Source: Bugula neritina (lineage: Eukaryota; Animalia; Bryozoa). From it: a DNA stretch of 24,814 bases. Each line of letters begins with the position of its first letter. Within the stretch, counting starts at the first letter, position 1. A program made the translations under genes and the position numbers. The stretch spans positions 1 to 24,814 of the forward strand of contig CAXIUT010000016.1 in assembly GCA_964035545.1 (NCBI GenBank), in the 5' to 3' direction. The notes beneath the pieces are model-generated. The model worked only from the letters and a program-made list of their open reading frames with translations, did no database searches and was not told the DNA's origin. Shown here piece by piece: positions 760 through 24,814 of this stretch.

Positions 760-3700
760 TCAATTAAAGCCTTTTTCAAAAATGTCCTTACTATCCTGAC
801 CAATATATTCAACTACAATGACAGAATCGTCCATTCCTTCTTGATCTTTTGACTTCTTCTTCACCACAATACTATCGTCAGGAAGAACTTTTGACTGATT
901 ATTTCTATGCCTCTTGATGAGAATTACTGCAATTACCAGAATAATAATTAGTGCCACTCCACCAGCTGCTGCTCCAATCATCATACCCATACCAGATGCT
1001 CCTTCTTCTCCTGCATTTTCATTATCTGATGGTGTCTGAGCGTCACTTATTGCTGTTATTTCTGTCCCTGTTACCTAGTAATCTGTTCCTGGTAAACCTT
1101 AAGCCAATCCTGCTGATAAAGTTTATGCTGCTTCTTCAGGTGTAGTTTATCCATCAGGATCAGCAGTTCCTTCAAGGATAGTAGAACCATTCCTCAGATC
1201 TTTGAAAGTAATAGCATTTGTGTTGTTTGTTGACTGTTTAAGAATCGAAAGAATGGCTCGAATAATACTAAAGAGGTCAGCTAGAATTGTATCAAGATCA
1301 ACTGCTATAACTATCTTGAAACTGACATAATTATTGACCTGACACTTCCATTTCTTTCTAGTATATCCATCGATACAAGTCAAACAGTTTCTCTTAGATC
1401 CTTTGCAAGTTAGACATGGAGATTTACATTTAAGACAGCGACCTCTATTTGATCTTCTTTTCAAAGTATATCCTTCAGCACAGCCAGTACATACAGATCG
1501 ACTCTTGCAAGTAGTACACTTAGTTTTGCAGCTTTAACAAGTTCCATCAGTTGAGTTAACATAGAATCCTTTCTCGCAAATGATGCATGACTTAGGATTA
1601 TAAAGAGCACACTGAAGGCAGTTTGATTTGACTGGACATTCTTAGCATGTAGCTCCTAACTGTTCAGTTAACAAATATAATTTAAGACCTTGTCCGCAGC
1701 CAGTACAAGCATTATCGGCATTACATGTGAGGTTGGCAGTACACTGACCAGTTGCTTGGGTCAGAATAACTCCTTTTTAGCATTGTGTGCAGAACGTAGG
1801 TTGACCTGGAGCACATTTAATACAAGGTAACTCGCATTATTGAACACAGACTCCAGTTGTATCAGCAACATATCCATCGAAACATTCGCTACATCCATTT
1901 TGATCGCACTAAAGGCATTTATCAGGACATTCCAGACAGTATCCATCAACAAGTCGAAGTCCTTAGTTACAAGTAGTACAATCTATGATTCTGGCAGGGT
2001 TGCAACTGCTGCAATTGATAGCACATCCCACACAAATACCATTCGAATCAGCACTAAATCCACTTATACATTCAGTACAGATAGTACTATCAGTGCAGTT
2101 AAGACAGTTATCACCACAAGGTTAACAACCAGCAGCTCCCATGAACTCAGTTGGTGGACAAGTAGTGCAGTTAGTTGATGAGAAAGTGCAGGCAACACAC
2201 TCATCAGCACATTCTTCACAAGTTTAGAGTTGCTAGTTGAAGAAACTTCCTTGGAAGCAAGTTGAACATTTAGTCGAGTTATCAGATTAGCAAACTTGAC
2301 ATCCAGGAGCACAACTACGGCAAGTGGAAGTAGTTGCTTAGAAGGCATAACCTTAAATACAAGCTGTGCATTAGCAATTAGTGCAGCCAGGAGCACAAAC
2401 TTTGACTTCTCCATCTTAAACCTATGATCTGTAGCTTCCTGATTGTTCATTGTTGAAAGAAGCTTAAATTCCATTGATTTCTTTGAGATGAACTTCTCTG
2501 ACTTCTGGAGTGCTTGTAATTTTAGTTTAGTTATACAAGTAGCTGATGCCTGCACTATTGGTAATGACTCTTGACTTAGACCATACTCTGTCAGATGGTA
2601 AAGTAGTTGATCCATGATAGGCTTCCATCATCATAGCATCTCTTTAAATGTAGAAAATATATTAATTTTAAAGGGATCCTGATGTTGGAGTTCTCATATA
2701 TACAAAGATTTCAGTTAGTGAGAAACTTGTTTGATCTACAAACTTAATTGTATCAACAGGATAAGAGATGCTTATCGATGTCTTTTAGGTGTAGTTGATA
2801 TGATAAAGCTCAACTTTATGAGTAATTTAGTAACTAGCATAAATTCTGATGTATCTTCCAGCTATAAGAACTTTAGTTAATTTTGGAGACACTTGTATTT
2901 GAGGAGTGTTGTTGAAGGCTTTTTCTGAATAGTTGAAACAACTTCCTAGAACTCCATTATTATCAGTAAAAGCAAAGACTTATCCGACACTATTTGATCC
3001 AGAACCATAACTAGCAGTTACCATCACTCGATTGCTATAAGAGTAAATATCACTACTGATATCAAAAGTAGTATCATGAGTATAGATACTTGTAAAGGCA
3101 TTAGTTGTTGAGCTGTATTTCCAGATAGATGGGCCATTACTTTCCAAAATATAAGTAAGTTCTTTATCTATCTTTTTCCAAGAAAGAGAAGCTGGAATAG
3201 TGATAGGAATCTGACTAGAAGTAGAAACTATTTTCAAAAGAAGAACTCCCACTCTGACTCTAGTGCAATCTTCTGACATTCCCCAAGTCTAAGTCGTAGT
3301 ATGAGGAGATACACCAGCTGTAGTCAGTTAATCACTGATATCTGCAGTAAAATCAAAGGTTTTAGAAACACTATTGAAGGTGTAAATTTTGTAACTAATA
3401 GTAGTTGAGACTTAAACTTTAATAATTTTACACTTCTTGTTCTGATGTACAACAGTGCAGATACCATTGACACTGAAAGTACTTTCTACTGTATTTGTTG
3501 ATGTACTGTTATCTTAAGTGATCACTGTGAAGTTAGTAATAGAACCATCATTCCACAAGTAAGTCCAGTAGAAGTCATTTGAAGATGACTCATGATATTC
3601 TAGATGTTGTGGCTAATTGAAGGTTATATAAGCATTATTGACTTTTTTCTGAACTACTCTGTTGGTAAGAATACTTCCATAATCCAATCCTTTGACCATC

Positions 3701-6700
3701 AAATTAGTCACTATGTTTGAGCTACCATCTGAAGTATTATAAACGAGTAAAGCCACAAGTTTATTATTCTAACTTGAGTCAATAGCCAATCTCTTGAAGC
3801 TAAACATTTATAAAGCTGAAGAATCGTATGTTAATTCCAATAAACTTCCGAAAGTAAGGTTTCTATAACGAAGGAAAACAACCATATTGTTAACTATTTG
3901 ATAAGCTTCTTAGATATAGAACTTGGGATCTCTAGTTGGATAGTAAGATGAGTCGTTTCTCATAATGATGAAGTTGTCAGTAAGATCCATTGAAGTACTA
4001 GTTTTAGTTTAGTTGAGAGTTTATAGAATACGAGTTGGATTACGGAAAATCAGATCTGTTATGGTCTTTTGAGTGTAATATACTTTCTTAAAGATAACAT
4101 TGTTAATATCGTTTCTTCTGACAATAGAACTCCAAGAGACTGTTTTTGTAGTATTAGAGTAGTTGAAACCAAAAGTATTAAGAGATGGAGAGTAGATAAG
4201 CTCTATTCCACTGACATCAGCGAAGTTTTATTCAATGATTCCATTAACATCAACTCTTCCTACAGTTGAAAAGCTTGTAGCTTCATTGTTAAACACAAAT
4301 ATGCTGAGGTTAGTCATCAAAGTGTACAAATCAGTCGCAAAAGAGTAAGAAGTATTTCCAAGTACATTTGAGTTAGCTCCATGAGCAATGATTTTATCTC
4401 CTTAACTCTTGATCTTGTAAGTTTGATAACTAGGGAAAGAATAGAGTTCACTAAAGGTTGTAGTAGCTTGATTGTATTTATAGAGTTTATTATTAGAGAT
4501 ATGATACATCAGATCTTGTGATGAAGATTGATGATTCCATCCTGAGTTGAAGCTCACTGCTGTCATAGATGTCCAATCAGAACTAACTTGATAGATAGTA
4601 GTTTGCTTAGTAGAATATTGGAAGTATTTGATGATACTACAGTCTTCACTAACTGATAGAGATCTTGACAGTTCACCTCTATTTATTGATGGGAATGCTG
4701 AAACAAAGTTGATTTATCCAAGTATACTAAAGGTTAAAGAAGTTCTATCCCATCTTAAGAGTCCAATTGAATTAACATTTTCATTAACTACAATACTACA
4801 TGATAAGCTACCTGTTGATCTCACTAAATAAGTCCATTTTCCAGCTTTTGTAACACTATATCTTGATGACTTATAAGTTGAAGGATCTGCTTCAGTAACA
4901 TTGTCTGTACCTGCAGATCTATTGAAGACTTGCAATTTGAACTAAGTTTGATTACTACTATGAACGATGTTCAAATCTTCAAACTTTTCTGATAAAATAA
5001 GTATATGTTAGATAGAATAGCTAAGTTTATTATCTTCAGTTGATTCTTGAAGGTAGTAAAGAGACTATGATTTTATTTCAGGTTATGGTTCATAGGCAAC
5101 TGCTGATGTAATGTCTGTAAGGTTAGTGATCTCAATACAGCTAGTAGTATAGCTCAATCCTGGAATTCCTTGAGCCAATCCTTACTTCAAAGTATCAGCC
5201 ATTTGATAGATATATCCTGATGAAGTAAGACTTCCCTCCAAGATAGTATGAGATCCATTATCTGATTAGACAATTGATTCGAAAGTAACATCTTCAGCAT
5301 CAGTTGATGGTTATCCAATGATAGTTAACAATCCAACAACAATAGAGTCAATATTGGCTAAAACAACTGAAGCATTATTTTCTGATAGGCAAAATTTGAA
5401 TCCAACAAAGATGCTATTTTGACATTTCCATCCTTTTTGAATAAAGCCATCAACACAAGATGTGCATCTAGTTAATGATCCAGCACATGTTTTACAAGGT
5501 TATCGGCAAGCAATACATTTACCTTCAGTAGTGCCACTCATGAGAGTATATCCTTATGAACAACTCATGCAACTAGTTTATCCTTTACATGTAGAACAGT
5601 TAGAGTGACAGGCAACGCAACTACCAATCGCAGAGTTGATATAATATCCGCTTTAACAGATATCGCAGTACAAAATATCTATGTTGTTGCATTGAAGGCA
5701 GTTAGAAATATTAGGGCAAGGATAACAAGTTGGTCCTTCTACTTCAGTCACTAAATAGTAGTTAAGACCTTGTCCACATGAAGTACAAGTGAAAGCTGCA
5801 CTGCAAGAAGTGTTGAAGATACATTTACTAGTTGTAGAGTTAACAAACGATCCTTTTTGACAGCTAGTACAGTTGTTTGGCTGGTTATCTACACAAGTTA
5901 CGCAAGGTAGGTGACATTTTTTGACACAAGTACCATTAGAGTTGAGTCTGTAACCATCTTAGCAAGTAGAACATTCATTATCAGCACATTATAAGCATCT
6001 ACTTGGACATCTTATGCATGAACCATTGAATTATTGCATTCCTTGACCACAGCTGAGACATTGAGTGATGTTATTAGGATCACAACTTGAACATTAAAGT
6101 GAACATCCTCGACATGAACTGTTATCAGAAGTTAGAGTAAATCCAATATCACACTCATCGCAAGATGATAGACTAGAACAAGAAAGGCAGTTTCTAATAA
6201 GGCAATCAGTACAAACCCCACTATCAATAAACTGTTTCGATGGACATGATGTGCAGTTATTTGATACAACAGAACAAGTAAGACAACTTGGCTAACAACT
6301 ACCACAACTGAAGTCAGTACTATTCCAAACAGTGCTAGTGGAACAAGCTGTGCAGTTAGAGGGGTTACTAGCTGAACATTAAATACATCCAGGAGCACAA
6401 GCTTTGCATGATGAAGAACTTTGATCATAGGCATATGCTTCGATGCAGGCAGTGCAGTCACAACTAGTACAACCTGGAGGACAGAATTTTACTTATCCAC
6501 CTTAAACTTACGAAGTTACAGAACCATTGTTTTATGAGTTGAAAATGACTTCTTCAGCACTAAGTTAGCGTATATTGACAATTCTTTTCGCCTAAGTTGT
6601 GCTAGATTGATCTAAAGTTTCATTAAAAACAAAAGTTTTTCCAACATTATTGATAACAATACGAGATTTGACCCAATTTACATTAGAATTTAAAGAATCT

Positions 6701-9700
6701 TACATTGTCAGAACATTTAAGATTTTACTATTATAGGCAAAATAATAGACATAGACAGTAGAAATAGTAGTTCTCACATAAAGATACTCATCTCCAAGAT
6801 TCCAATAACTGTTATCAAGTGCTGATATTTCCCATGTCGGGAATTTAATACTTGTATTAGTATGTTCATAATAGTTAATATGATATAGATCTACTTTTTT
6901 GACAATAGTTCCATTTTTCAGTGAATATTGACCAACTACGAGTACTTTACTCAATTTTGGTGAGTGTTTGAGTTCATAAAGATCAAGCCATGTTGATGAA
7001 GAGTATTCGAAACATTTTTCAAGACTATTGCTAGTATGAATATAGTTAAAAGCTTGAATTGTAGCATCATTGTTGGTAGGATCTTTAGATGAAATAACTA
7101 ACCGGTTATTCCATGAATATAACTTACTCCAAAAGTTTAAAGCGACTGCTGGTGTGTATACTTTGCTAAAATTATCTGAATACTAACTGTATTTCCATAA
7201 GGAATTATCACTTTTTTCCATTATATATGTAACATTGTTATCAGTTTTTGACAAATTAAATGATGCTGGCAATGTGAGAGGAACATATTGATGGTAAAAT
7301 GACCTTTTCAAGATAACTTATTTTATTTTAATTCTTTTGCAATCTTCAGAAACTGCCCATTCTGAACTGTCAGCAAGGTCACTTGCAGTATAAGAAGATA
7401 TTTTAAAAGTAATGTCTGCTTCTCCAAGCATATTAAAGTTAGAATCATATGATCGCACTTTGAAGACACTACCTGTGCTGCTGATTTGACATTTATAGAT
7501 CTGGCATTTCCTATTTTGAAGCATTATACTACAAGTTCCTTAAGCAACGAAATTACTTTAGACCAAGTGATTTGTTGTACTGTTTTCAGCTACCTTGGTT
7601 CTAAAATGACTGGTCTGTGTAAGATGGCTGATATAAGTCCAATAGAAGTCATCATCCAAAGAATAAAATTCATCATGAACTGGTTATTAAGTATTTATAT
7701 AGTCAGAAGATTATTCTTAGGGGATAACTCTGTTTGCTGCCACACTTCCATACACAAATTAAGAAGCAATATAGGTCTAACTATCAGCTGAACTGTTGGA
7801 AAGAATAAGACCTACCAGTTTGTTATTATAACTCGTGTCAATGCCCAGATATCTGAAGCTAGAAAGTTTTTGCTTTAATATACTTCTTTCAGAATCAGAT
7901 ATGTTTGAATCAGCATCAAGTAAGTTTCTTTGTCTCAAAAATACCATGTTATTACCAACGATTTCATAAGCCTCTTCAATATAGTCATGATAAGATACAG
8001 CACTTGGATGATACCAAGAATCATTTCTGAGAAGAAGATATTTATTAGTCAAAACTATCCTTTTAGGCTTGTAGAATGATGATATTCCTAGTTGAGTTTG
8101 AAGGAAACGATCTGAACTTCTAAAACCGATATCATATATCTTGCCTCTTGTGTAATCCACTCGTTTGAATACAACTTTGTTTATTGATCCTCTTCTATAG
8201 ACAGTATTTCCTCCGAATTGAGTTGATTGAAGATTATCAGAATAGTTCAAACCGAAGATTGTTAGATCAGGTGAGCAAAGTAGTTAGATTGCACTTTCAT
8301 TTGATAGACTCTATTCGATTATTTAGTTGACATTGACTACATCAATATTTGGTATGTTTGTTACTTGATCTTTAAAGGCATAAATACTGAGGTTAGTTCG
8401 AATTGTGATAATATCCGGTAAACTTTCAATATAACCTGAGTTAGCAGCTGAAACAAGTATATTTAAGTTTGCACTCTTGATTTTGAATGTTTGGTAGCTT
8501 GGGAAAGAGTAAATCTCATCAAATGAGTTAGTATTTTTGTTAACTTTGTAGAGTTTATTACTGAAAACATGGTACATTAGATCATCTGAAGAAGCTTGAA
8601 GAGACATACCAGAGTTAATAGTTAATGGAATTAAAACTAATTGATCGTTCATGTGATAGAAGGAAATGGTCTTGTTCAAATGTTAGAAAGATAATAATGA
8701 ACAATCTTAACTGACTTTGAAAGCAACTTACAATTCTTCTAAAGCTATTTCTAAAGTTGTTGCAGCAGTAAAACTGTTTGAAACAAAGGTACCCATCAAA
8801 CTTTTAAAAGACTTCATATTTTAACTCCATTTTAAGAGACCAAGTTTACTTAACTCAAAGTCAAATACAAGAGAACATCCAAGACTAGTACTAGAACTAA
8901 CAACATGACGCCATGTATTTTAGAAAGCTGCTTTATATGTTGACATCTGATAAGTTGATTAATCTGATGAGTTGAAAGACATATTGTTACTGTTAGATCG
9001 ATTTAAGACTTTTAAGGTAAACTATGTCTTATTTAAGGTTGAGGTTTCAATATTTTCTAATTCTAAACTTTAGAATTTAGGTGAAAAGATTAGCTTTTTA
9101 TCTGCTGAAGAGTTCCGGAAACCAGCAAGAGATGATGAAGTAAGTTCAGGTTATGGAGCATAAGGTCACTCCAATTATAGTAGTAGAGTTGGTGTGGTTT
9201 GAACCTGAAGAGTTGGTGTAGTTGTTAGAGGTGGAGTTAGTGTGGTTGTAGTTGGAGTGGTTTGAGCCTGAAGAGTTGGTGTAGTTGGTGTAGGTCGAGT
9301 TAGTGTGGTTGTAGTTGGAATGGTTTGAACCCGAAGAGTTGGTGTAGTTGTTAGAGGTGGAGTTAGTATGGTTGTAGTTGGAGTGGTTTGAGCCTGAAGA
9401 GTTGGTGTAGTTGGCATAGGTGGAGTTAGTATGGTTGTAGTTGGAATGGTTTGAACCCGAAGAGTTGGTGTAGTTGTTATAGGTGGAGTTAGGTAGTTGG
9501 AATGGTTTGAACCTGAAGAGTTGGTGTAGTTGGCATAGGTGGAGTTAGTGTGGTTGTAGTTGGAGTGATTTGAACCTGAAGAGTTGGTGTAGTTGGCATA
9601 GGTGGAGTTAGTGTGGTTGTAGTTGGAGTGGTTTGAACCCGAAGAGTTGGTGTAGTTGTTATAGGTTGAGTTAGGTGAAACTTGGTCACTTAGTGATCTA

Positions 9701-12700
9701 TAAACCCATTCTTTGACAGCGTAAGTGCCATTCACAGTAGTATTGCAGAGAGTTAAGGCTGTAAGTGGATATCAGGATTGGGATCTATTCCAAGCTCTTT
9801 AAATGAGAGGACATCTGATAGATAAGAATTTGCATTTGTATTTGGGCTATTAGAGAAGTCATCAACAAGAATTCTTTCTCTCATAAAAATGATTTCATTT
9901 TCTACTATTTAATAAGCTTGTTCTACAAGTTTTTGAGTTGTCCAGTTGCTATAGTAAGTATCGTTCCTGACCAATATAAATCTTTCGTCCATGACAAGTC
10001 GTGTAGCTGGTCTCCAACTAACATAAGAATTATTAACTGTCTTAAGGAAAAGTTCAGGTTCTCTGAAGTTGAGGTCATTAATCTTGTTTTGTATATAGTC
10101 TACTTTTTGAACAACAAGTGTCTTTGAGTGACTGGCCTTTGGGTTGTCTCCTAGTAATAAGATGAATTTGAATAATTATATCTTTTGGTATGTGTAATTG
10201 TAAGTTTAATTAGTGTAGTTAAGACCAAAAGAAGTAAGTTCAGGAGAACACAACAAGTCGATGTCAATCCAAGGTCCATAATAGTTTTATCCTTTGATTC
10301 CATTGACTTGAACCTTTTCAATGAAAATAAGATTAGCTCCATTATCATTGAAGACATAAATACTTAAGTTTGCCTAAAGAACTTTAGTGTAAGTATAATA
10401 AGTATCAATGACTTTTGTTTCAGTTGCATAGACTATAAGTCTTCCTGATGCTCCTTTGATTTTTAAAATTTTGAAGATTTTCTGGGAAGGAAAAGAGAAG
10501 GCTAAAGTTTGCATAGTTTCTATTGAACTTATAGAGTTTGGATGAAGATACAAAGTAAATTAGATCTTAACTAGCAACTTAAGGATTCCATTAAGAAGAA
10601 GAAGGAGGATTAACTGCAGACACATACATCCAGTTGGTGCTTGCTTGATAGAGAGTCATCTTTATGTTGAGTTTGTTGAGTTTGAAGTATAATTACTTGC
10701 ATTATTCTTCTTTTCAGTGAAAGATATAAGCGAGCAGTCTTCATTTACCATGAACTCATTTTTAAATCATGTATAGCTCCATTATCCGAACTGAAAGTAG
10801 TCAAAGGGAAGGTTCCAAGGACAGTCAACCCAGTTTTATTCCACCTGAGAAGGCCTATTTGTAAAGTTATTTCATCATAAATGACAGAACAACTAAGGCT
10901 ATCATTAGAACTAACTACATAACGCCACCTACCAGAGTAAATCGTTTAATAAGTAGATAACTTGAAAGTAGTAGGATACCAGTTCATGGCATCACCACTG
11001 TATGAGTTAGCTGATCTATTGAGCACGTTCAACTTGAACTGAGACTAGAAGCCGTGATGTGTAATTTCTAAATTTTAGAACTTAGAAGAAAGAATCAACT
11101 TATTATCAGCTTCAGAATCTTTTAAGAAGAAGAGAGTTGAAGTTTTCATCTAAGGCGATGATGATGTGTTGTAGTTGGAGTGATTTGAACCTGAAGAGTT
11201 GGTGTAGTTGGTGTAGGTGGAGTTAGTGTGGTTGTAGTTGGAGTGGTTTGAACCTGAAGAGTTGGTGTAGCTGGTGTAGGTGGAGTTAGTGTGGTTGTAG
11301 TTGGAGTGGTTTGAGCCTGAAGAGTTGGTGTAGTTGTTATAGGTGGAGTTAGTGTGGTTGTAGTTGGAGTGGTTTGAACCCGAAGAGTTGGTGTAGTTGT
11401 TATAGGTTGAGTTAGGTGAAACTTGGTCACTTAGTGATCTATAAACCCATTCTTTGACAGCGTAAGTGCCATTCACAGTAGTATTGCAGAGAGTTAAGGC
11501 TGTAAGTGGATATTCAGGATTGGGATCTATTCCAAGCTCTTTAAATGAGAGGACATCTGATAGATAAGAATTTGCATTTGTATTTGGGCTATTAGAGAAG
11601 TCATCAACAAGAATTCTTTCTCTCATAAAAATGATTTCATTTTCTACTATTTAATAAGCTTGTTCTACAAGTTTTTGAGTTGTCCAGTTGCTATAGTAAG
11701 TATCGTTCCTGACCAATATAAATCTTTCGTCCATGACAAGTCGTGTAGCTGGTCTCCAACTAACATAAGAATTATTAACTGTCTTAAGGAAAAGTTCAGG
11801 TTCTCTGAAGTTGAGGTCATTAATCTTGTTTTGTATATAGTCTACTTTTTTGAACAACAAGTGTCTTGAGTGACTGGCCTTTGGGTTGTCTCCTAGTAAT
11901 AAGATGATTTGAATAATTATATCTTTGGTATGTGTAATTGTAAGTTTAATTAGTGTAGTTAAGACCAAAAGAAGTAAGTTCAGGAGAACACAACAAGTCG
12001 ATGTCAATCCAAGGTCCATAATAGTTTTATCCTTTGATTCCATTGACTTGAACCTTTTCAATGAAAATAAGATTAGCTCCATTATCATTGAAGACATAAA
12101 TACTTAAGTTTGCCTAAAGAACTTTAGTGTAAGTATAATAAGTATCAATGACTTTTGTTTCAGTTGCATAGACTATAAGTCTTCCTGATGCTCCTTTGAT
12201 TTTAAAATTTTGAAGATTTTCTGGGAAGGAAAAGAGAAGGCTAAAGTTTGCATAGTTTCTATTGAACTTATAGAGTTTGGATGAAGATACAAAGTAAATT
12301 AGATCTTAACTAGCAACTTAAGGATTCCATTAAGAAGAAGAAGGAGGATTAACTGCAGACACATACATCCAGTTGGTGCTTGCTTGATAGAGAGTCATCT
12401 TTTATGTTGAGTTTGTTGAGTTTGAAGTATAATTACTTGCATTATTCTTCTTTTCAGTGAAAGATATAAGCGAGCAGTCTTCATTTACCATGAACTCATT
12501 TTTAAAATCATGTATAGCTCCATTATCCGAACTGAAAGTAGTCAAAGGGAAGGTTCCAAGGACAGTCAACCCAGTTTTATTCCACCTGAGAAGGCCTATT
12601 TGTAAAGTTATTTCATCATAAATGACAGAACAACTAAGGCTATCATTAGAACTAACTACATAACGCCACCTACCAGAGTAAATCGTTTAATAAGTAGATA

Positions 12701-15700
12701 ACTTGAAAGTAGTAGGATACCAGTTCATGGCATCACCACTGTATGAGTTAGCTGATCTATTGAGCACGTTCAACTTGAACTGAGACTAGAAGCCGTGATG
12801 TGTAATTTCTAAATTTTAGAACTTAGAAGAAAGAATCAACTTATTATCAGCTTCAGAATCTTTTAAGAAGAAGAGAGTTGAAGTTTTCATCTAAGGCGAT
12901 GATGATGTGTTGTAGTTGGAGTGGTTTGAACCTGAAGAGTTGGTGTAGTTGGCATAGGTGGAGTTAGTGTGGTTGAAGTTGGAGTGGTTTGAACCTGAAG
13001 AGTTGGTGTAGTTGGTGTAGGTCGAGTTAGTGTGGTTGTAGTTGGAGTGGTTTGAACCTGAAGAGTTGGTGTAGTTGGCATAGGTGGAGTTAGTGTGGTT
13101 GTAGTTGGAGTGGTTTGAACCTGAAGAGTTGGTGTAGTTGGTGTAGGTCGAGTTAGTGTGGTTGTAGTTGGAGTGATTTGAACCTGAAGAGTTGGTGTAG
13201 TTGGCATAGGTGGAGTTAGTGTGGTTGTAGTTGGAGTGGTTTTGAACCCGAAGAGTTGGTGTAGTTGTTATAGGTTGAGTTAGGTGAAACTTGGTCACTT
13301 AGTGATCTATAAACCCATTCTTTGACAGCGTAAGTGCCATTCACAGTAGTATTGCAGAGAGTTAAGGGCTGTAAGTGGATATTCAGGATTGGGATCTATT
13401 CCAAGCTCTTTAAATGAGAGGACATCTGATAGATAAGAATTTGCATTTGTATTTGGGCTATTAGAGAAGTCATCAACAAGAATTCTTTCTCTCATAAAAA
13501 TGATTTCATTTTCTACTATTTAATAAGCTTGTTCTACAAGTTTTGAGTTGTCCAGTTGCTATAGTAAGTATCGTTCCTGACCAATATAAATCTTTCGTCC
13601 ATGACAAGTCGTGTAGCTGGTCTCCAACTAACATAAGAATTATTAACTGTCTTAAGGAAAAGTTCAGGTTCTCTGAAGTTGAGGTCATTAATCTTGTTTT
13701 GTATATAGTCTACTTTTTTGAACAACAAGTGTCTTTGAGTGACTGGCCTTTGGGTTGTCTCCTAGTAATAAGATGAATTTGAATAATTATATCTTTGGTA
13801 TGTGTAATTGTAAGTTTAATTAGTGTAGTTAAGACCAAAAGAAGTAAGTTCAGGAGAACACAACAAGTCGATGTCAATCCAAGGTCCATAATAGTTTTAT
13901 CCTTTGATTCCATTGACTTGAACCTTTTCAATGAAAATAAGATTAGCTCCATTATCATTGAAGACATAAATACTTAAGTTTGCCTAAAGAACTTTAGTGT
14001 AAGTATAATAAGTATCAATGACTTTTGTTTCAGTTGCATAGACTATAAGTCTTCCTGATGCTCCTTTGATTTTAAAATTTTGAAGATTTTCTGGGAAGGA
14101 AAAGAGAAGGCTAAAGTTTGCATAGTTTCTATTGAACTTATAGAGTTTGGATGAAGATACAAAGTAAATTAGATCTTAACTAGCAACTTAAGGATTCCAT
14201 TAAGAAGAAGAAGGAGGATTAACTGCAGACACATACATCCAGTTGGTGCTTGCTTGATAGAGAGTCATCTTTTATGTTGAGTTTGTTGAGTTTGAAGTAT
14301 AATTACTTGCATTATTCTTCTTTTCAGTGAAAGATATAAGCGAGCAGTCTTCATTTACCATGAACTCATTTTTTAAAATCATGTATAGCTCCATTATCCG
14401 AACTGAAAGTAGTCAAAGGGAAGGTTCCAAGGACAGTCAACCCAGTTTTATTCCACCTGAGAAGGGCCTATTTGTAAAGTTATTTCATCATAAATGACAG
14501 AACAACTAAGGCTATCATTAGAACTAACTACATAACGCCACCTACCAGAGTAAATCGTTTAATAAGTAGATAACTTGAAAGTAGTAGGATACCAGTTCAT
14601 GGCATCACCACTGTATGAGTTAGCTGATCTATTGAGCACGTTCAACTTGAACTGAGACTAGAAGCCGTGATGTGTAATTTCTAAATTTTAGAACTTAGAA
14701 GAAAGAATCAACTTATTATCAGCTTCAGAATCTTTTAAGAAGAAGAGAGTTGAAGTTTTCATCTAAGGCGATGATGATGTGTTGTAGTTGGAGTGATTTG
14801 AACCTGAAGAGTTGGTGTAGTTGGCATAGGTGGAGTTAGTGTGGTTGTAGTTGGAGTGGTTTGAACCTGAAGAGTTGGTGTAGTTGGTGTAGGTCGAGTT
14901 AGTGTGGTTGTAGTTGGAGTGATTTGAACCTGAAGAGTTGGTGTAGTTGGCATAGGTGGAGTTAGTGTGGTTGTAGTTGGAGTGGTTTGAACCTGAAGAG
15001 TTGGTGTAGTTGGCATAGGTGGAGTTAGTGTGGTTGTAGTTGGAGTGGTTTGAACCCGAAGAGTTGGTGTAGTTGTTATAGGTTGAGTTAGGTGAAACTT
15101 GGTCACTTAGTGATCTATAAACCCATTCTTTGACAGCGTAAGTGCCATTCACAGTAGTATTGCAGAGAGTTAAGGCTGTAAGTGGATATTCAGGATTGGG
15201 ATCTATTCCAAGCTCTTTAAATGAGAGGACATCTGATAGATAAGAATTTGCATTTGTATTTGGGCTATTAGAGAAGTCATCAACAAGAATTCTTTCTCTC
15301 ATAAAAATGATTTCATTTTCTACTATTTAATAAGCTTGTTCTACAAGTTTTTGAGTTGTCCAGTTGCTATAGTAAGTATCGTTCCTGACCAATATAAATC
15401 TTTCGTCCATGACAAGTCGTGTAGCTGGTCTCCAACTAACATAAGAATTATTAACTGTCTTAAGGAAAAGTTCAGGTTCTCTGAAGTTGAGGTCATTAAT
15501 CTTGTTTTGTATATAGTCTACTTTTTTGAACAACAAGTGTCTTTGAGTGACTGGCCTTTGGGTTGTCTCCTAGTAATAAGATGAATTTGAATAATTATAT
15601 CTTTGGTATGTGTAATTGTAAGTTTAATTAGTGTAGTTAAGACCAAAAGAAGTAAGTTCAGGAGAACACAACAAGTCGATATCAATCCAAGGTCCATAAT

Positions 15701-18700
15701 AGTTTTATCCTTTGATTCCATTGACTTGAACCTTTTCAATGAAAATAAGATTAGCTCCATTATCATTGAAGACATAAATACTTAAGTTTGCCTAAAGAAC
15801 TTTAGTGTAAGTATAATAAGTATCAATGACTTTTGTTTCAGTTGCATAGACTATAAGTCTTCCTGATGCTCCTTTGATTTTAAAATTTTGAAGATTTTCT
15901 GGGAAGGAAAAGAGAAGGCTAAAGTTTGCATAGTTTCTATTGAACTTATAGAGTTTGGATGAAGATACAAAGTAAATTAGATCTTAACTAGCAACTTAAG
16001 GATTCCATTAAGAAGAAGAAGGAGGATTAACTGCAGACACATACATCCAGTTGGTGCTTGCTTGATAGAGAGTCATCTTTTATGTTGAGTTTGTTGAGTT
16101 TGAAGTATAATTACTTGCATTATTCTTCTTTTCAGTGAAAGATATAAGCGAGCAGTCTTCATTTACCATGAACTCATTTTTAAAATCATGTATAGCTCCA
16201 TTATCCGAACTGAAAGTAGTCAAAGGGAAGGTTCCAAGGACAGTCAACCCAGTTTTATTCCACCTGAGAAGGCCTATTTGTAAAGTTATTTCATCATAAA
16301 TGACAGAACAACTAAGGCTATCATTAGAACTAACTACATAACGCCACCTACCAGAGTAAATCGTTTAATAAGTAGATAACTTGAAAGTAGTAGGATACCA
16401 GTTCATGGCATCACCACTGTATGAGTTAGCTGATCTATTGAGCACGTTCAACTTGAACTGAGACTAGAAGCCGTGATGTGTAATTTCTAAATTTTAGAAC
16501 TTAGAAGAAAGAATCAACTTATTATCAGCTTCAGAATCTTTTAAGAAGAAGAGAGTTGAAGTTTTCATCTAAGGCGATGATGATGTGTTGTAGTTGGAGT
16601 GGTTTGAACCTGAAGAGTTGGTGTAGTTGGTGTAGGTGGAGTTAGTGTGGTTGTAGTTGGAGTGGTTTGAACCTGAAGAGTTGGTGTAGCTGGTGTAGGT
16701 GGAGTTAGTGTGGTTGTAGTTGGAGTGGTTTGAGCCTGAAGAGTTGGTGTAGTTGTTATAGGTGGAGTTAGTGTGGTTGTAGTTGGAGTGGTTTGAACCC
16801 GAAGAGTTGGTGTAGTTGTTATAGGTTGAGTTAGGTGAAACTTGGTCACTTAGTGATCTATAAACCCATTCTTTGACAGCGTAAGTGCCATTCACAGTAG
16901 TATTGCAGAGAGTTAAGGCTGTAAGTGGATATTCAGGATTGGGATCTATTCCAAGCTCTTTAAATGAGAGGACATCTGATAGATAAGAATTTGCATTTGT
17001 ATTTGGGCTATTAGAGAAGTCATCAACAAGAATTCTTTCTCTCATAAAAATGATTTCATTTTCTACTATTTAATAAGCTTGTTCTACAAGTTTTTGAGTT
17101 GTCCAGTTGCTATAGTAAGTATCGTTCCTGACCAATATAAATCTTTCGTCCATGACAAGTCGTGTAGCTGGTCTCCAACTAACATAAGAATTATTAACTG
17201 TCTTAAGGAAAAGTTCAGGTTCTCTGAAGTTGAGGTCATTAATCTTGTTTTGTATATAGTCTACTTTTTTGAACAACAAGTGTCTTTGAGTGACTGGCCT
17301 TTGGGTTGTCTCCTAGTAATAAGATGAATTTGAATAATTATATCTTTGGTATGTGTAATTGTAAGTTTAATTAGTGTAGTTAAGACCAAAAGAAGTAAGT
17401 TCAGGAGAACACAACAAGTCGATGTCAATCCAAGGTCCATAATAGTTTTATCCTTTGATTCCATTGACTTGAACCTTTTCAATGAAAATAAGATTAGCTC
17501 CATTATCATTGAAGACATAAATACTTAAGTTTGCCTAAAGAACTTTAGTGTAAGTATAATAAGTATCAATGACTTTTGTTTCAGTTGCATAGACTATAAG
17601 TCTTCCTGATGCTCCTTTGATTTTAAAATTTTGAAGATTTTCTGGGAAGGAAAAGAGAAGGCTAAAGTTTGCATAGTTTCTATTGAACTTATAGAGTTTG
17701 GATGAAGATACAAAGTAAATTAGATCTTAACTAGCAACTTAAGGATTCCATTAAGAAGAAGAAGGAGGATTAACTGCAGACACATACATCCAGTTGGTGC
17801 TTGCTTGATAGAGAGTCATCTTTTATGTTGAGTTTGTTGAGTTTGAAGTATAATTACTTGCATTATTCTTCTTTTCAGTGAAAGATATAAGCGAGCAGTC
17901 TTCATTTACCATGAACTCATTTTTAAAATCATGTATAGCTCCATTATCCGAACTGAAAGTAGTCAAAGGGAAGGTTCCAAGGACAGTCAACCCAGTTTTA
18001 TTCCACCTGAGAAGGCCTATTTGTAAAGTTATTTCATCATAAATGACAGAACAACTAAGGCTATCATTAGAACTAACTACATAACGCCACCTACCAGAGT
18101 AAATCGTTTAATAAGTAGATAACTTGAAAGTAGTAGGATACCAGTTCATGGCATCACCACTGTATGAGTTAGCTGATCTATTGAGCACGTTCAACTTGAA
18201 CTGAGACTAGAAGCCGTGATGTGTAATTTCTAAATTTTAGAACTTAGAAGAAAGAATCAACTTATTATCAGCTTCAGAATCTTTTAAGAAGAAGAGAGTT
18301 GAAGTTTTCATCTAAGGCGATGATGATGTGTTGTAGTTGGAGTGATTTGAACCTGAAGAGTTGGTGTAGTTGGTGTAGGTGGAGTTAGTGTGGTTGTAGT
18401 TGGAGTGGTTTGAACCTGAAGAGTTGGTGTAGTTGGTGTAGGTCGAGTTAGTGTGGTTGTAGTTGGAGTGATTTGAACCTGAAGAGTTGGTGTAGTTGGT
18501 GTAGGTGGAGTTAGTGTGGTTGTAGTTGGAGTGGTTTGAACCTGAAGAGTTGGTGTAGTTGGTGTAGGTCGAGTTAGTGTGGTTGTAGTTGGAGTGGTTT
18601 GAACCCGAAGAGTTGGTGTAGTTGTTATAGGTTGAGTTAGGTGAAACTTGGTCACTTAGTGATCTATAAACCCATTCTTTGACAGCGTAAGTGCCATTCA

Positions 18701-21700
18701 CAGTAGTATTGCAGAGAGTTAAGGCTGTAAGTGGATATTCAGGATTGGGATCTATTCCAAGCTCTTTAAATGAGAGGACATCTGATAGATAAGAATTTGC
18801 ATTTGTATTTGGGCTATTAGAGAAGTCATCAACAAGAATTCTTTCTCTCATAAAAATGATTTCATTTTCTACTATTTAATAAGCTTGTTCTACAAGTTTT
18901 TGAGTTGTCCAGTTGCTATAGTAAGTATCGTTCCTGACCAATATAAATCTTTCGTCCATGACAAGTCGTGTAGCTGGTCTCCAACTAACATAAGAATTAT
19001 TAACTGTCTTAAGGAAAAGTTCAGGTTCTCTGAAGTTGAGGTCATTAATCTTGTTTTGTATATAGTCTACTTTTTTGAACAACAAGTGTCTTTGAGTGAC
19101 TGGCCTTTGGGTTGTCTCCTAGTAATAAGATGAATTTGAATAATTATATCTTTGGTATGTGTAATTGTAAGTTTAATTAGTGTAGTTAAGACCAAAAGAA
19201 GTAAGTTCAGGAGAACACAACAAGTCGATGTCAATCCAAGGTCCATAATAGTTTTATCCTTTGATTCCATTGACTTGAACCTTTTCAATGAAAATAAGAT
19301 TAGCTCCATTATCATTGAAGACATAAATACTTAAGTTTGCCTAAAGAACTTTAGTGTAAGTATAATAAGTATCAATGACTTTTGTTTCAGTTGCATAGAC
19401 TATAAGTCTTCCTGATGCTCCTTTGATTTTAAAATTTTGAAGATTTTCTGGGAAGGAAAAGAGAAGGCTAAAGTTTGCATAGTTTCTATTGAACTTATAG
19501 AGTTTGGATGAAGATACAAAGTAAATTAGATCTTAACTAGCAACTTAAGGATTCCATTAAGAAGAAGAAGGAGGATTAACTGCAGACACATACATCCAGT
19601 TGGTGCTTGCTTGATAGAGAGTCATCTTTTATGTTGAGTTTGTTGAGTTTGAAGTATAATTACTTGCATTATTCTTCTTTTCAGTGAAAGATATAAGCGA
19701 GCAGTCAGTCTTCATTTACCATGAACTCATTTTTAAAATCATGTATAGCTCCATTATCCGAACTGAAAGTAGTCAAAGGGAAGGTTCCAAGGACAGTCAA
19801 CCCAGTTTTATTCCACCTGAGAAGGCCTATTTGTAAAGTTATTTCATCATAAATGACAGAACAACTAAGGCTATCATTAGAACTAACTACATAACGCCAC
19901 CTACCAGAGTAAATCGTTTAATAAGTAGATAACTTGAAAGTAGTAGGATACCAGTTCATGGCATCACCACTGTATGAGTTAGCTGATCTATTGAGCACGT
20001 TCAACTTGAACTGAGACTAGAAGCCGTGATGTGTAATTTCTAAATTTTAGAACTTAGAAGAAAGAATCAACTTATTATCAGCTTCAGAATCTTTTAAGAA
20101 GAAGAGAGTTGAAGTTTTCATCTAAGGCGATGATGATGTGTTGTAGTTGGAGTGGTTTGAACCTGAAGAGTTGGTGTAGTTGGTGTAGGTGGAGTTAGTG
20201 TGGTTGTAGTTGGAGTGGTTTGAACCTGAAGAGTTGGTGTAGCTGGTGTAGGTGGAGTTAGTGTGGTTGTAGTTGGAGTGGTTTGAGCCTGAAGAGTTGG
20301 TGTAGTTGTTATAGGTGGAGTTAGTGTGGTTGTAGTTGGAGTGGTTTGAACCCGAAGAGTTGGTGTAGTTGTTATAGGTTGAGTTAGGTGAAACTTGGTC
20401 ACTTAGTGATCTATAAACCCATTCTTTGACAGCGTAAGTGCCATTCACAGTAGTATTGCAGAGAGTTAAGGCTGTAAGTGGATATTCAGGATTGGGATCT
20501 ATTCCAAGCTCTTTAAATGAGAGGACATCTGATAGATAAGAATTTGCATTTGTATTTGGGCTATTAGAGAAGTCATCAACAAGAATTCTTTCTCTCATAA
20601 AAATGATTTCATTTTCTACTATTTAATAAGCTTGTTCTACAAGTTTTTGAGTTGTCCAGTTGCTATAGTAAGTATCGTTCCTGACCAATATAAATCTTTC
20701 GTCCATGACAAGTCGTGTAGCTGGTCTCCAACTAACATAAGAATTATTAACTGTCTTAAGGAAAAGTTCAGGTTCTCTGAAGTTGAGGTCATTAATCTTG
20801 TTTTGTATATAGTCTACTTTTTTGAACAACAAGTGTCTTTGAGTGACTGGCCTTTGGGTTGTCTCCTAGTAATAAGATGAATTTGAATAATTATATCTTT
20901 GGTATGTGTAATTGTAAGTTTAATTAGTGTAGTTAAGACCAAAAGAAGTAAGTTCAGGAGAACACAACAAGTCGATGTCAATCCAAGGTCCATAATAGTT
21001 TTATCCTTTGATTCCATTGACTTGAACCTTTTCAATGAAAATAAGATTAGCTCCATTATCATTGAAGACATAAATACTTAAGTTTGCCTAAAGAACTTTA
21101 GTGTAAGTATAATAAGTATCAATGACTTTTGTTTCAGTTGCATAGACTATAAGTCTTCCTGATGCTCCTTTGATTTTAAAATTTTGAAGATTTTCTGGGA
21201 AGGAAAAGAGAAGGCTAAAGTTTGCATAGTTTCTATTGAACTTATAGAGTTTGGATGAAGATACAAAGTAAATTAGATCTTAACTAGCAACTTAAGGATT
21301 CCATTAAGAAGAAGAAGGAGGATTAACTGCAGACACATACATCCAGTTGGTGCTTGCTTGATAGAGAGTCATCTTTTATGTTGAGTTTGTTGAGTTTGAA
21401 GTATAATTACTTGCATTATTCTTCTTTTCAGTGAAAGATATAAGCGAGCAGTCTTCATTTACCATGAACTCATTTTTAAAATCATGTATAGCTCCATTAT
21501 CCGAACTGAAAGTAGTCAAAGGGAAGGTTCCAAGGACAGTCAACCCAGTTTTATTCCACCTGAGAAGGCCTATTTGTAAAGTTATTTCATCATAAATGAC
21601 AGAACAACTAAGGCTATCATTAGAACTAACTACATAACGCCACCTACCAGAGTAAATCGTTTAATAAGTAGATAACTTGAAAGTAGTAGGATACCAGTTC

Positions 21701-23790
21701 ATGGCATCACCACTGTATGAGTTAGCTGATCTATTGAGCACGTTCAACTTGAACTGAGACTAGAAGCCGTGATGTGTAATTTCTAAATTTTAGAACTTAG
21801 AAGAAAGAATCAACTTATTATCAGCTTCAGAATCTTTTAAGAAGAAGAGAGTTGAAGTTTTCATCTAAGGCGATGATGATGTGTTGTAGTTGGAGTGGTT
21901 TGAACCTGAAGAGTTGGTGTAGTTGGCATAGGTGGAGTTAGTGTGGTTGAAGTTGGAGTGGTTTGAACCTGAAGAGTTGGTGTAGTTGGTGTAGGTCGAG
22001 TTAGTGTGGTTGTAGTTGGAGTGGTTTGAACCTGAAGAGTTGGTGTAGTTGGCATAGGTGGAGTTAGTGTGGTTGTAGTTGGAGTGGTTTGAACCTGAAG
22101 AGTTGGTGTAGTTGGTGTAGGTCGAGTTAGTGTGGTTGTAGTTGGAGTGATTTGAACCTGAAGAGTTGGTGTAGTTGGCATAGGTGGAGTTAGTGTGGTT
22201 GTAGTTGGAGAGTGATCTATAAACCCATTCTTTGACAGCGTAAGTGCCATTCACAGTAGTATTGCAGAGAGTTAAGGCTGTAAGTGGATATTCAGGATTG
22301 GGATCTATTCCAAGCTCTTTAAATGAGAGGACATCTGATAGATAAGAATTTGCATTTGTATTTGGGCTATTAGAGAAGTCATCAACAAGAATTCTTTCTC
22401 TCATAAAAATGATTTCATTTTCTACTATTTAATAAGCTTGTTCTACAAGTTTTTGAGTTGTCCAGTTGCTATAGTAAGTATCGTTCCTGACCAATATAAA
22501 TCTTTCGTCCATGACAAGTCGTGTAGCTGGTCTCCAACTAACATAAGAATTATTAACTGTCTTAAGGAAAAGTTCAGGTTCTCTGAAGTTGAGGTCATTA
22601 ATCTTGTTTTGTATATAGTCTACTTTTTTGAACAACAAGTGTCTTTGAGTGACTGGCCTTTGGGTTGTCTCCTAGTAATAAGATGAATTTGAATAATTAT
22701 ATCTTTGGTATGTGTAATTGTAAGTTTAATTAGTGTAGTTAAGACCAAAAGAAGTAAGTTCAGGAGAACACAACAAGTCGATGTCAATCCAAGGTCCATA
22801 ATAGTTTTATCCTTTGATTCCATTGACTTGAACCTTTTCAATGAAAATAAGATTAGCTCCATTATCATTGAAGACATAAATACTTAAGTTTGCCTAAAGA
22901 ACTTTAGTGTAAGTATAATAAGTATCAATGACTTTTGTTTCAGTTGCATAGACTATAAGTCTTCCTGATGCTCCTTTGATTTTAAAATTTTGAAGATTTT
23001 CTGGGAAGGAAAAGAGAAGGCTAAAGTTTGCATAGTTTCTATTGAACTTATAGAGTTTGGATGAAGATACAAAGTAAATTAGATCTTAACTAGCAACTTA
23101 AGGATTCCATTAAGAAGAAGAAGGAGGATTAACTGCAGACACATACATCCAGTTGGTGCTTGCTTGATAGAGAGTCATCTTTTATGTTGAGTTTGTTGAG
23201 TTTGAAGTATAATTACTTGCATTATTCTTCTTTTCAGTGAAAGATATAAGCGAGCAGTCTTCATTTACCATGAACTCATTTTTAAAATCATGTATAGCTC
23301 CATTATCCGAACTGAAAGTAGTCAAAGGGAAGGTTCCAAGGACAGTCAACCCAGTTTTATTCCACCTGAGAAGGCCTATTTGTAAAGTTATTTCATCATA
23401 AATGACAGAACAACTAAGGCTATCATTAGAACTAACTACATAACGCCACCTACCAGAGTAAATCGTTTAATAAGTAGATAACTTGAAAGTAGTAGGATAC
23501 CAGTTCATGGCATCACCACTGTATGAGTTAGCTGATCTATTGAGCACGTTCAACTTGAACTGAGACTAGAAGCCGTGATGTGTAATTTCTAAATTTTAGA
23601 ACTTAGAAGAAAGAATCAACTTATTATCAGCTTCAGAATCTTTTAAGAAGAAGAGAGTTGAAGTTTTCATCTAAGGCGATGATGATGTGTTGTTTGGACT
23701 GTAAGTAATATTAGAATGAGAACTATTGTTCTGGGCACTAGCTAAAGTAGCTATGATAAGAATCACACCTAGTATCATGATGCTTTTCAT
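760..23790 (-). CDS. Giant (~7,670 aa) type I transmembrane cell-surface glycoprotein, ciliate code (TAA/TAG=Gln); frameshifts in the repeat array are probably sequencing errors
   Basis: Starts MKSIMILGVILIIATLASAQNNSS at ATG 23790 and ends ...DIFEKGFN-TGA at 760-762. Manual reading found no in-frame TGA from 9165 to 763 (~2,800 codons) or from 23790 to 19708. The supplied ORFs starting at 990, 1464, 3279, 4935, 6954, 7524, 8250 and 8679 share one frame and are separated only by TAA/TAG. Small indels between ~9170 and 14470 and at ~19705 shift the frame relative to sibling repeat copies. Confidence 0.85.
916..981 (-). other. Transmembrane helix MIGAAAGGVALIIILVIAVILI followed by a KRHR stop-transfer
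   Basis: About 22 hydrophobic residues with a GxxxG motif, then a positive-inside basic cluster and a ~50-aa tail to the stop. Confidence 0.92.
1048..1335 (-). other. Juxtamembrane SEA-like domain 2 with a G-S-T-I-L motif (putative)
   Basis: NYVSFKIVI-helix(LDTILADLFSIIRAILSIL)-AITFKDLRNGSTILEGTA-helix(PEEAAQTLSAGLAQG)-YQVTGTEITA. The beta-alpha-beta-beta-alpha-beta pattern and the GS hairpin resemble the SEA GSVVV motif. Confidence 0.55.
1342..2397 (-). other. Cys-rich CxxC furin-like/VSP-like repeat stalk 2 (~350 aa)
   Basis: CAPGCTNCQCTACIQGYAF...CKSPCLTCKGSKRNCLTCIDGYTRKKWKC. Colinear with stalk 1 at an offset of about 4.08 kb. Confidence 0.9.
2404..5094 (-). other. Module 2 beta-rich ectodomain (~895 aa), diverged paralogue of module 1
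   Basis: EPQPEIKS vs APQPELTS; FKLQVFNRS vs FTLKVLNRS; SSQDLMYHISNNKLYKY vs SSDDLMYHVFSNKLYKV; YSFPSYQTYKIKS vs YSFPSYQTFKIKS; DFYWTY in both. Confidence 0.8.
5110..5415 (-). other. SEA-like domain 1 (putative)
   Basis: IFVGFKFCL-helix(VVLANIDSIVVGLLTII)-VTFESIVQSDNGSHTILEGSL-helix(MADTLKQGLAQG)-YTTSCIEIT. Paralogous to the juxtamembrane domain. Confidence 0.5.
5422..6483 (-). other. Cys-rich CxxC furin-like/VSP-like repeat stalk 1 (~350 aa)
   Basis: CPPGCTSCDCTACIEAYAY...CKACAPGCIQC...CRQPCKTCAGSLTRCTSCVDGFIQKGWKC. The CxxCxxxCxxC...CxxCxxG[YF] periodicity is typical of furin-like Cys-rich repeats. Confidence 0.9.
6490..9165 (-). other. Module 1 beta-rich ectodomain (~890 aa); its N-half is homologous to the 499-aa repeat domain
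   Basis: Shared motifs with the repeat unit: DKKLIFSPKFQSLE vs DNKLILSSKFQNLE; VVFKRVDY vs LLFKKVDY; LLLRNDS vs ILVRNDT; EEAYEIVGNNMVFLRQR vs EQAYQIVENEIIFMRER. Confidence 0.8.
9185..9672 (-). repeat. 63-bp Asn-rich linker 8 (~8 units, most diverged)
   Basis: Eight NSSGS cores, private variants (STSNNY, CAT codons) and a 7-nt gap near 9492. Confidence 0.9.
11168..11413 (-). repeat. 63-bp Asn-rich linker 7 (4 units)
   Basis: Variant order NN, NN, TS, TN; same as linkers 2 and 4. Confidence 0.93.
12909..13281 (-). repeat. 63-bp Asn-rich linker 6 (6 units)
   Basis: Variant order NN, AN, TN, AN, TN, AN, with the SNFNHT variant shared with linker 1. One extra T near 13241. Confidence 0.93.
14781..15089 (-). 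repeat. 63-bp Asn-rich linker 5 (5 units)
   Basis: Variant order NN, AN, AN, TN, AN. Confidence 0.93.
16587..16832 (-). repeat. 63-bp Asn-rich linker 4 (4 units)
   Basis: Variant order NN, NN, TS, TN; same as linker 2. Confidence 0.93.
18330..18638 (-). repeat. 63-bp Asn-rich linker 3 (5 units)
   Basis: Variant order NN, TN, TN, TN, TN. Confidence 0.93.
20140..20385 (-). repeat. 63-bp Asn-rich linker 2 (4 units)
   Basis: Variant order NN, NN, TS, TN after NSTY. Confidence 0.93.
21883..22210 (-). repeat. 63-bp Asn-rich linker 1 (5 units; the SDQVSP junction is removed by an exact 63-bp deletion)
   Basis: Encodes (NSTY[A/T]NYTNSSGSNHSN[Y/F]NHT)n and joins RSL directly to SNYNHT. Confidence 0.92.
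23734..23790 (-). other. Signal peptide MKSIMILGVILIIATLASA
   Basis: Basic n-region (K), hydrophobic core, and an A-S-A (-3,-1) cleavage motif followed by Q. Confidence 0.85.
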
Positions 23791-24745: not shown

Positions 24746-24814
24746 GGGGTTGGGGTTGGGGTTGGGGTTGGGGTTGGGGTTGGGGTTGGGGTTGGGGTTG
24801 GGGTTGGGGTTGGG
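24746..24814. repeat. Right telomere, (GGGGTT)n
   Basis: Perfect GGGGTT repeats to the last base. They are the reverse complement of the left end, with the G-strand running 5'->3' towards the terminus, so the molecule is complete. Confidence 0.98.

Follow-up and report, generated by a model that had tools for sequence, protein, structure and literature searches.

The 24,814-bp stretch of DNA analysed here (contig CAXIUT010000016.1; in the following, the window) is a complete linear chromosome, as indicated by C4A2 repeats at one end and G4T2 repeats at the other, and on balance its product is probably a single glycoprotein of about 7,675 residues with type I membrane topology, building a multi-propeller array on the surface of a ciliate. 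In its predicted ectodomain, twelve propellers are combined with two stalks rich in disulfides, a pair of SEA-like domains and eight linkers dense in sequons. Judged from sequence comparisons, the protein belongs, as an expanded form, to a small unnamed family for which the only sources known to date are a few uncultured ciliates.

Chromosome and architecture of the encoded protein

Read with the standard or bacterial code, the window has no open frame longer than about 200 codons. If TGA alone is taken as stop, segments of 1,374, 1,797 and 2,801 codons are open on the minus strand, which can be joined to a single coding sequence from an ATG at 23790 to the last codon at 763-765 and a TGA at 760-762. 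As assembled, the frame of this coding sequence is interrupted at about 20 small indels, while the C-terminal 2,801 codons form one unbroken open frame. The flanking regions (87-759 and 23791-24745) are AT-rich (guanine-plus-cytosine (GC) content 22-26 %) and contain no transfer RNA gene, no Rfam match and no open reading frame above about 107 codons, suggesting a single-gene chromosome. The following features were assigned:

1-86: telomere, C4A2 repeats (read directly)
24746-24814: telomere, G4T2 repeats (read directly)
760-23790, minus strand: the one coding sequence, about 7,675 codons with the TGA stop (760-762) counted in (segments left open when TGA alone is read as stop; translations; unit alignment)
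23731-23790, minus strand: signal peptide of about 20 residues, hydrophobic core followed by A-S-A-Q (translation; equivalent N-terminal signal peptides in homologues)
9166-23685, minus strand: array of eight units, each an A-type propeller (about 490 residues) plus an N-glycan linker (repeat finding, unit alignment; relative with matching tandem layout)
7696-9165, minus strand: A' propeller, a diverged A copy (paralogue alignments; source of the 168-residue query that recovered the family)
6496-7695, minus strand: B' propeller-like domain, remote paralogue of A (hhalign of A versus B)
5431-6495, minus strand: cysteine-rich stalk 1 with 63 Cys and 29 CxxC (residue count; paralogous to stalk 2)
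5101-5430, minus strand: SEA-like domain 1, without a membrane helix after it (alignment with modelled homologue; G-S-H-T-I-L-E-G motif)
3586-5100, minus strand: A'' propeller (paralogue and homologue alignments)
2416-3585, minus strand: B'' domain (paralogue alignments; A versus B profile comparison)
1345-2415, minus strand: cysteine-rich stalk 2 with 63 Cys and 29 CxxC (residue count; Pfam VSP match)
1030-1344, minus strand: SEA-like domain 2, adjoining the membrane (alignment; topology of homologue model; fold matches)
913-987, minus strand: transmembrane helix (top hydropathy window of the C-terminal 2,801 residues; position conserved in homologues)
763-912, minus strand: cytoplasmic tail of 50 residues, charged, with no recognised domain (translation; Pfam gave only sub-threshold membrane-segment matches)

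Gene order thus runs from the signal peptide through eight near-identical units of A plus linker to two successive sets of A, B, 63-Cys stalk and a domain of about 105 residues, followed by the transmembrane helix and the tail. The C-terminal 2,801 residues represent a tandem duplicate of one module, the two copies of which share 37 % identity; each consists of (i) an A domain of 490-505 residues, (ii) a B domain of 390-400 residues, (iii) a stalk and (iv) a domain of 105-110 residues. An earlier reading made from the letters alone (the sequence-only reading) had placed the gene at exactly these coordinates, in agreement with the ATG and TGA found here, and its modular layout (signal peptide, units, two modules, membrane helix with tail) is borne out by the translations and alignments.

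At the start of the membrane helix a small-xxx-small pattern is kept in the window as well as in L002, L003, L004, L006 and L008 (contigs of related sequences described below), reading G-L-I-V-G-L-V-V-G-L in the relatives and being G/A-rich in the window. Such a pattern could serve helix-helix pairing.

Propeller domains

The domains of the window contain in-frame TAA/TAG codons, hence only stop-free pieces were used for searches, and structures were modelled on homologues. An exhaustive phmmer search with a 168-residue piece of A' against 1.84 billion representative sequences retrieved only 13 matches at E up to 1e-3, all of them fragments of 95-518 residues; a follow-up search provided P0014, a stop-free stretch of 584 residues that covers the entire A domain. 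The AlphaFold model of P0014 (residues 1-480) is all-beta with a mean predicted local distance difference test score (pLDDT) of 65 and values of 80-94 in the core; P0014 is only 24-30 % identical to the A copies of the window, the underlying alignment is shallow (20 rows) and the first 93 residues are poorly modelled. All top matches of this model in a Foldseek search of the PDB are beta-propellers. VIA-align yielded Z scores of 10-12 to the 8- and 9-bladed propellers of eIF3b/eIF2A and DPP4, and the ESM Atlas returned PQQ, FG-GAP, LVIVD and lactonase propellers at template modelling (TM) scores of 0.4-0.5, its feature search giving only a weak lead (a YqgU-like propeller at 0.89). According to these models, A is a large beta-propeller of no named sequence family, probably with 7-9 blades.

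At E up to 1, no Pfam match was obtained for the A and B pieces of the window, for P0014 and P0013, or for the B piece of L003, and the profiles of the named propeller families (WD40, Kelch, FG-GAP, YWTD, PQQ, Sema, Vps10/BNR) likewise remained without match to the A and B pieces and their homologues. A sortilin/Vps10 assignment of the propeller was rejected for want of any Pfam match. Profile comparison with hhalign aligned A and B over 232 columns with a probability of 97 % and an E value of 6e-11, from which B is assigned as a shorter, remote paralogue of A. Because B is homologous to A, twelve related propeller domains are counted rather than the ten homologous beta-domains of the sequence-only reading, which had correctly distinguished eight near-identical and two diverged A copies. 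The same reading did not recognise the A domain, a beta-rich stretch of about 500 residues; this agrees with the absence of a Pfam family, while the fold predicted by AlphaFold and matched by Foldseek, VIA-align and the ESM Atlas is a known one.

Further searches added little. A word-index protein search with the 168-residue piece gave no match, its length window leaving out longer relatives; a profile word search with the homologue alignment gave no new members, and sequence searches of the PDB were uninformative. MAFFT alignments that combined stop-free pieces taken at different places along the domain were misaligned, with blades stacked upon each other, and a single piece was used as query.

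Cysteine-rich stalks and juxtamembrane domains

Cysteines are concentrated in the two stalks, with only 2-5 in each A and B domain. The Pfam profile VSP (PF03302, cut-off 31.4 bits) scores 37.7 bits on window 1150-1533, 65.3 bits on L003 and 42.1 bits on L002, in line with the two Cys-rich stalks recognised earlier.

The juxtamembrane domain was modelled from L003 with a 10-row alignment (pLDDT 77) and displays the order beta-alpha-beta-beta-alpha-beta. In Foldseek, the top match of this model is dystroglycan (E 9e-4), followed by the SEA region of Gpr126 and by IA-2; the Atlas likewise gave dystroglycan (TM 0.63) and also EpCAM. An exhaustive VIA search scored the SEA domain of MUC16 with Z 7.2 and ribosomal protein S6 with Z 8.7, so that the SEA match is no stronger than that of generic ferredoxin-like folds. 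Pfam SEA (PF01390) gave no match at E up to 1 with pieces of the window or with homologues, nor is the domain covered by any other Pfam family, and a profile search of PDB sequences with this domain returned nothing relevant. SEA domains self-cleave at the turn between beta2 and beta3. The SEA motif at this turn is of the type G-S-(V/I)-V-V. In all seven copies compared, a G-S pair is located at the modelled beta2-beta3 turn, as G-S-V-V-V in L004 and as G-S-T-I-L and G-S-H-T-I-L in the window; the G-S pair suggests SEA-type self-cleavage. The domain is accordingly designated SEA-like in fold and position, membership in the SEA family being unproven; the SEA-like domains named by the sequence-only reading hold with respect to modelled fold order and position, and lack a profile match and a score above that of ferredoxin-like folds.

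One may go further and speculate that this domain is a true SEA-type self-cleaving module in a ciliate, i.e., that a mucin-like, force-releasable tether is combined with a lineage-specific propeller array kept identical by gene conversion. This is possible but rather unlikely. If correct, the SEA breakaway mechanism would be much older than animals or would have evolved twice, and the family would be pointed to as a surface adhesion or coat system of peritrich-code ciliates. In any case, the family offers a concrete test for SEA-like self-cleaving modules outside animals.

Eight-unit array and sequon-rich linkers

The eight units are spaced by 1741-1872 nucleotides (nt), with lengths of 1806, 1743, 1810, 1743, 1806, 1872, 1741 and 1741 nt in gene order. 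When their domain parts (1.2 kb each) are aligned, a single substitution is found, along with 1-nt indels and one tandem duplication of GACT. This near-identity of the eight units reflects, as far as can be read from the alignment, recent amplification or gene conversion.

Each unit ends with a linker built as an array of a 63-nt repeat, detected by Tandem Repeats Finder:

21883-22210, minus strand: linker of the first unit in gene order, 63-nt period (21-residue repeat with 5 sequons; assigned additionally by frame and sequon count)
20140-20387, 18330-18640, 16587-16834, 14781-15091, 12909-13283, 11168-11415 and 9187-9674, minus strand: linkers of the other units

The repeat is present in 3.9 to 7.9 copies per unit, resulting in linkers of 84-168 residues. 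The 21-residue repeat is rich in N, S, T, Y and H, contains five N-x-S/T sequons and is devoid of proline. All three coding-strand frames of the 63-nt repeat are open; adopted here is the frame that, in the intact units, runs through from one flanking domain into the next. It is supported by the N-rich linker that a relative (L007) carries at the equivalent place. An alternative frame reads as a Pro/Thr-rich, mucin-like repeat, which is picked up by open reading frame lists based on the bacterial code.

Related sequences and evolution

A single-module form of about 1,430 residues (signal peptide, A, B, VSP-type stalk, SEA-like domain, membrane helix and short tail) is encoded at six further loci, on contigs L002, L003, L004/L005, L006 and L008/L010, representing at least five other ciliate sources. 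L002 (10.1 kb, 45 % GC) is likewise a complete chromosome, capped at either end by C4A2/G4T2 telomeres, and carries the family member at 5496-9890; GC contents of the other relatives are 36 % (L003), 51-52 % (L004/L005) and 35 % (L006). Because the module exists on its own in other ciliates, the window protein is interpreted as a module that was duplicated inside the ectodomain and received an eightfold amplified A head in front. For model ciliates, the family is taken to be absent on the strength of one search with a single sequence, the 168-residue piece.

L007, from a metagenome assembly in the European Nucleotide Archive, harbours two successive A units that are 85 % identical to each other, with an N-rich sequon linker between them; the layout of A plus linker is therefore conserved and not an assembly artefact. 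Over 444 codons, the unit shares 65 % identity with the closest relative, L001, and the ratio of nonsynonymous to synonymous substitution rates (dN/dS) is 0.21, which indicates purifying selection. The identical units of the window versus the 85 % likeness in the relative represent a clean example of rapid repeat homogenisation.

Upstream of the family member, L002 (1-10091) contains other long open frames, pointing to a ciliate with small multi-gene chromosomes. Sequencing adaptor remnants are present at the ends of public assembly contigs (Nextera-type at both ends of L001 and L007, TruSeq-type at the 5' end of L008), so that the first or last residues of proteins called on these ends are artefactual.

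Frame interruptions and integrity of the gene

Units are numbered here from the C-terminal part outward, i.e., units 1-3 adjoin it and unit 6 is the third in gene order. All of the approximately 20 frame breaks lie within units 1-3 and unit 6. In the domain parts 16 indel events were mapped, and further small indels occur in the linkers of units 1 and 3; among the 1-nt indels mapped in the domain parts of units 1-3, 12 of 13 are located in homopolymer runs.

19707-19710, minus strand: tandem duplication of GACT, in gene order the earliest of the frame breaks (unit alignment; frame change at that position)
9773-14464, minus strand: zone of 1-nt frame-breaking indels in the domain parts of units 1-3 (unit alignment; more in the linkers of units 3 and 1)
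near 14464, 14374, 13545, 13368, 11908, 11868, 10767, 10664, 10464, 10186, 10109 and 9773, minus strand: indel positions (unit alignment)

As a check against short reads, Logan contigs from four runs (three studies) were compared over 13300-14700, which covers the four unit-3 indel sites. At all four (13366, 13540, 14369 and 14464), every crossing Logan contig has the frame-keeping form without any other difference, and one Logan contig of 1,604 nt differs from the window by exactly these four gaps. Since the indels fall nearly all into homopolymers and are accompanied by essentially no substitutions, and since the contigs keep the frame, the frame breaks are probably assembly errors of the uncorrected long-read type.

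Several results weigh against an intact single membrane glycoprotein of the proposed make-up. Apart from the distant and shallow model of A and the missing profile and unspecific fold match of the SEA-like domain described above, these are (i) the tendency of Logan contigs to collapse the eight copies and to drop rare variants, which leaves room for a true indel in one copy, (ii) the extent of the contig check, which was confined to the four unit-3 sites, and (iii) the outcome of a search of RNA runs, none of which was found to hold the gene.

The gene may be real and its repeat array mis-assembled, with more or fewer A units than the eight shown or with other linker lengths. Near-identical repeats of 1.8 kb are hard to assemble, the units are almost 100 % identical, the indel pattern points to error-prone long reads, and the short-read contigs collapse the array. 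A simple assembly loop, however, would not yield units that each have their own linker copy number together with a few private linker substitutions. The contig is moreover capped by telomeres at both ends, and tandem A units occur in a related species as well. Mis-assembly of the array is on this evidence unlikely.

Slightly less probable still is true decay of the gene, with genuine frame breaks. Translation would in that case end shortly past the GACT duplication (third unit in gene order), the product would be at most a secreted fragment of about 1,360 residues lacking a membrane anchor, and the remainder of the gene would be a dead relic. The assembled frame does change at 19707-19710 and at about 19 further sites; the missing RNA run would fit, and collapsed contigs are compatible with a variant in one copy of eight. 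Real decay, however, would add substitutions, of which only one is found among the eight domain parts, with 1-nt indels almost confined to homopolymers. It is further contradicted by the contigs running straight through all four checked sites in frame-keeping form, by the fully open 2,801-codon part downstream of every break and by the purifying selection on the unit relative to L001.

Two or more separately expressed genes, e.g., a secreted propeller array and a membrane protein starting at A', are highly improbable even though family members elsewhere are stand-alone proteins beginning at the A domain, given that neither A' nor A'' brings its own signal peptide or start context, each following in frame directly after a linker or SEA-like domain 1, that the latter is not followed by a membrane helix, and that 760-23790 contains no AT-rich intergenic spacer of the kind seen in the flanks.

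Among the runs used for the short-read check, X3 and X5 come from other studies and carry other organism labels; at low depth, both contain stretches that are 100 % identical to parts of the repeat unit. The sequence is thus not confined to the source sample, and the ciliate of the window is probably present in the X3 and X5 samples, too.

Proposed function and comparison with known surface proteins

In the single-glycoprotein reading preferred here, the signal peptide would direct the protein into the secretory pathway and the single C-terminal helix would anchor it, leaving 50 residues in the cytoplasm. Outward from the membrane, two sets of SEA-like domain, VSP-type CxxC stalk, B and A would be followed by the string of eight near-identical A propellers. 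The propellers may provide ligand-binding surfaces, and the flexible linkers, if glycosylated, could stiffen into spacers, setting the heads apart along an extended filament or multivalent brush. The predicted cleavage at the G-S pair would leave two non-covalently held parts, separable under force. Since the tails of the family are short and poorly conserved, a role as adhesive or protective component of the surface coat (towards substrate, prey or other cells) appears more plausible than that of a signalling enzyme; the adhesin, receptor or coat functions suggested in the sequence-only reading are reasonable in this respect.

The overall design resembles that of SEA-module surface proteins (MUC1, MUC16, dystroglycan, IA-2, Gpr126), which share the type I topology, the heavily glycosylated repetitive spacers (predicted from sequons in the window protein) and a small beta-alpha-beta-beta-alpha-beta domain beside the membrane with G-S at the beta2-beta3 turn (the latter seen here in the homologue model); MUC16 also has repeated SEA modules in one chain. 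The window protein differs from them by the lack of a Pfam SEA match, by heads predicted as beta-propellers and by its host being a ciliate rather than an animal. In contrast to the Pro/Thr/Ser O-glycan repeats of membrane-tethered mucins, its spacers are rich in N-x-S/T and free of proline.

Giardia VSPs (variant-specific surface proteins) and other protist proteins with CxxC repeats (PF03302) have in common with the window protein CxxC-dense repeats, which its two stalks match above the cut-off, and the type I membrane topology. In Giardia VSPs, the ectodomain consists entirely of VSP repeats, followed by a very short tail with a conserved ending. In the window protein the match is restricted to the stalk (about 355 of 7,675 residues) and the tail has 50 residues and a different ending, while Giardia VSPs possess neither propellers nor glycan linkers nor a SEA-like domain.

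A propeller head on a disulfide-rich stalk with one helix and a short tail is also known from the Sema-PSI proteins (semaphorins/plexins), the YWTD-EGF part of the LDL receptor and the Vps10-10CC part of sortilin. The Pfam families defining the propellers of these receptors are unmatched, however, and the fold matches are generic across propeller classes, indicating a resemblance in design and not kinship.

The classical ciliate surface antigens, i.e., those of Paramecium, SerH of Tetrahymena and the i-antigens of Ichthyophthirius, are GPI (glycosylphosphatidylinositol)-anchored and Cys-periodic throughout. They are similar to the window protein in being abundant-looking, repetitive and Cys-containing with internally homogenised repeats. 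The contrast to these antigens drawn previously is confirmed by the membrane helix with its charged 50-residue tail and by the restriction of the cysteines largely to the two stalks, A and B being Cys-poor.

The literature search found no paper describing this protein or its family. None of the component folds is new in itself, and protists commonly possess large surface proteins of repetitive build. New are the sequence family of the propeller, its combination with a VSP-type stalk and a SEA-like domain in ciliates, and the expansion to eight plus four propellers. A ciliate surface-protein family unnamed in any profile library is thereby described, expanded in one species to about 7,700 residues with twelve propellers.

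Genetic code

UAR is translated as Glu in the peritrich code (table 30). A code with UAA as Glu was reportedly described by Sanchez-Silva et al. in 2003. In the window, only TGA serves as stop; 86 in-frame TAA/TAG codons, 15 of them TAG, lie within the C-terminal 2,801 codons. When the two C-terminal super-repeats are aligned, TAA/TAG codons in conserved context stand opposite E ten times and opposite Q three times. Compared with homologues, TAA coincides with a conserved E at six separate sites and with a conserved Q at one (A-Y-Q), the latter disagreeing with Glu. Relative to L001, TAA/TAG codons of the window are replaced by GAA/GAG at 6 of 11 sites and by CAA at one. L004 and L005, two metagenome contigs of 99.4 % identity, differ at one A-domain codon (GAG versus TAG), which may be taken as a direct hint that in this relative TAG stands for Glu. 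Over all columns within the protein, the residues opposite TAA/TAG do not separate Glu from Gln; separation is achieved by conserved context and by close relatives.

On the basis of these alignments, TAA/TAG more likely encode Glu (table 30) than Gln (table 6); the latter code had been assumed in the sequence-only reading and fits less well with the E versus Q counts, the L001 alignment and the L004/L005 pair. The choice alters 86 of the last 2,801 residues and does not affect the architecture. A code in which UAA and UAG are read differently, as treated in PMC10553269, was considered as an alternative; the TAG sites of the window are too few to discriminate. Codes for two peritrich transcriptomes were predicted in PMC4967479.

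Annotation with the standard code or with table 6, together with uncorrected long-read indels, would hide or break a gene of this type, and such proteins are probably under-counted in ciliate assemblies.

At one conserved site of A'' (D-S-S-TAG-N-N-K-L), the TAG codon is aligned with Y, F or I in the relatives, and not with E.

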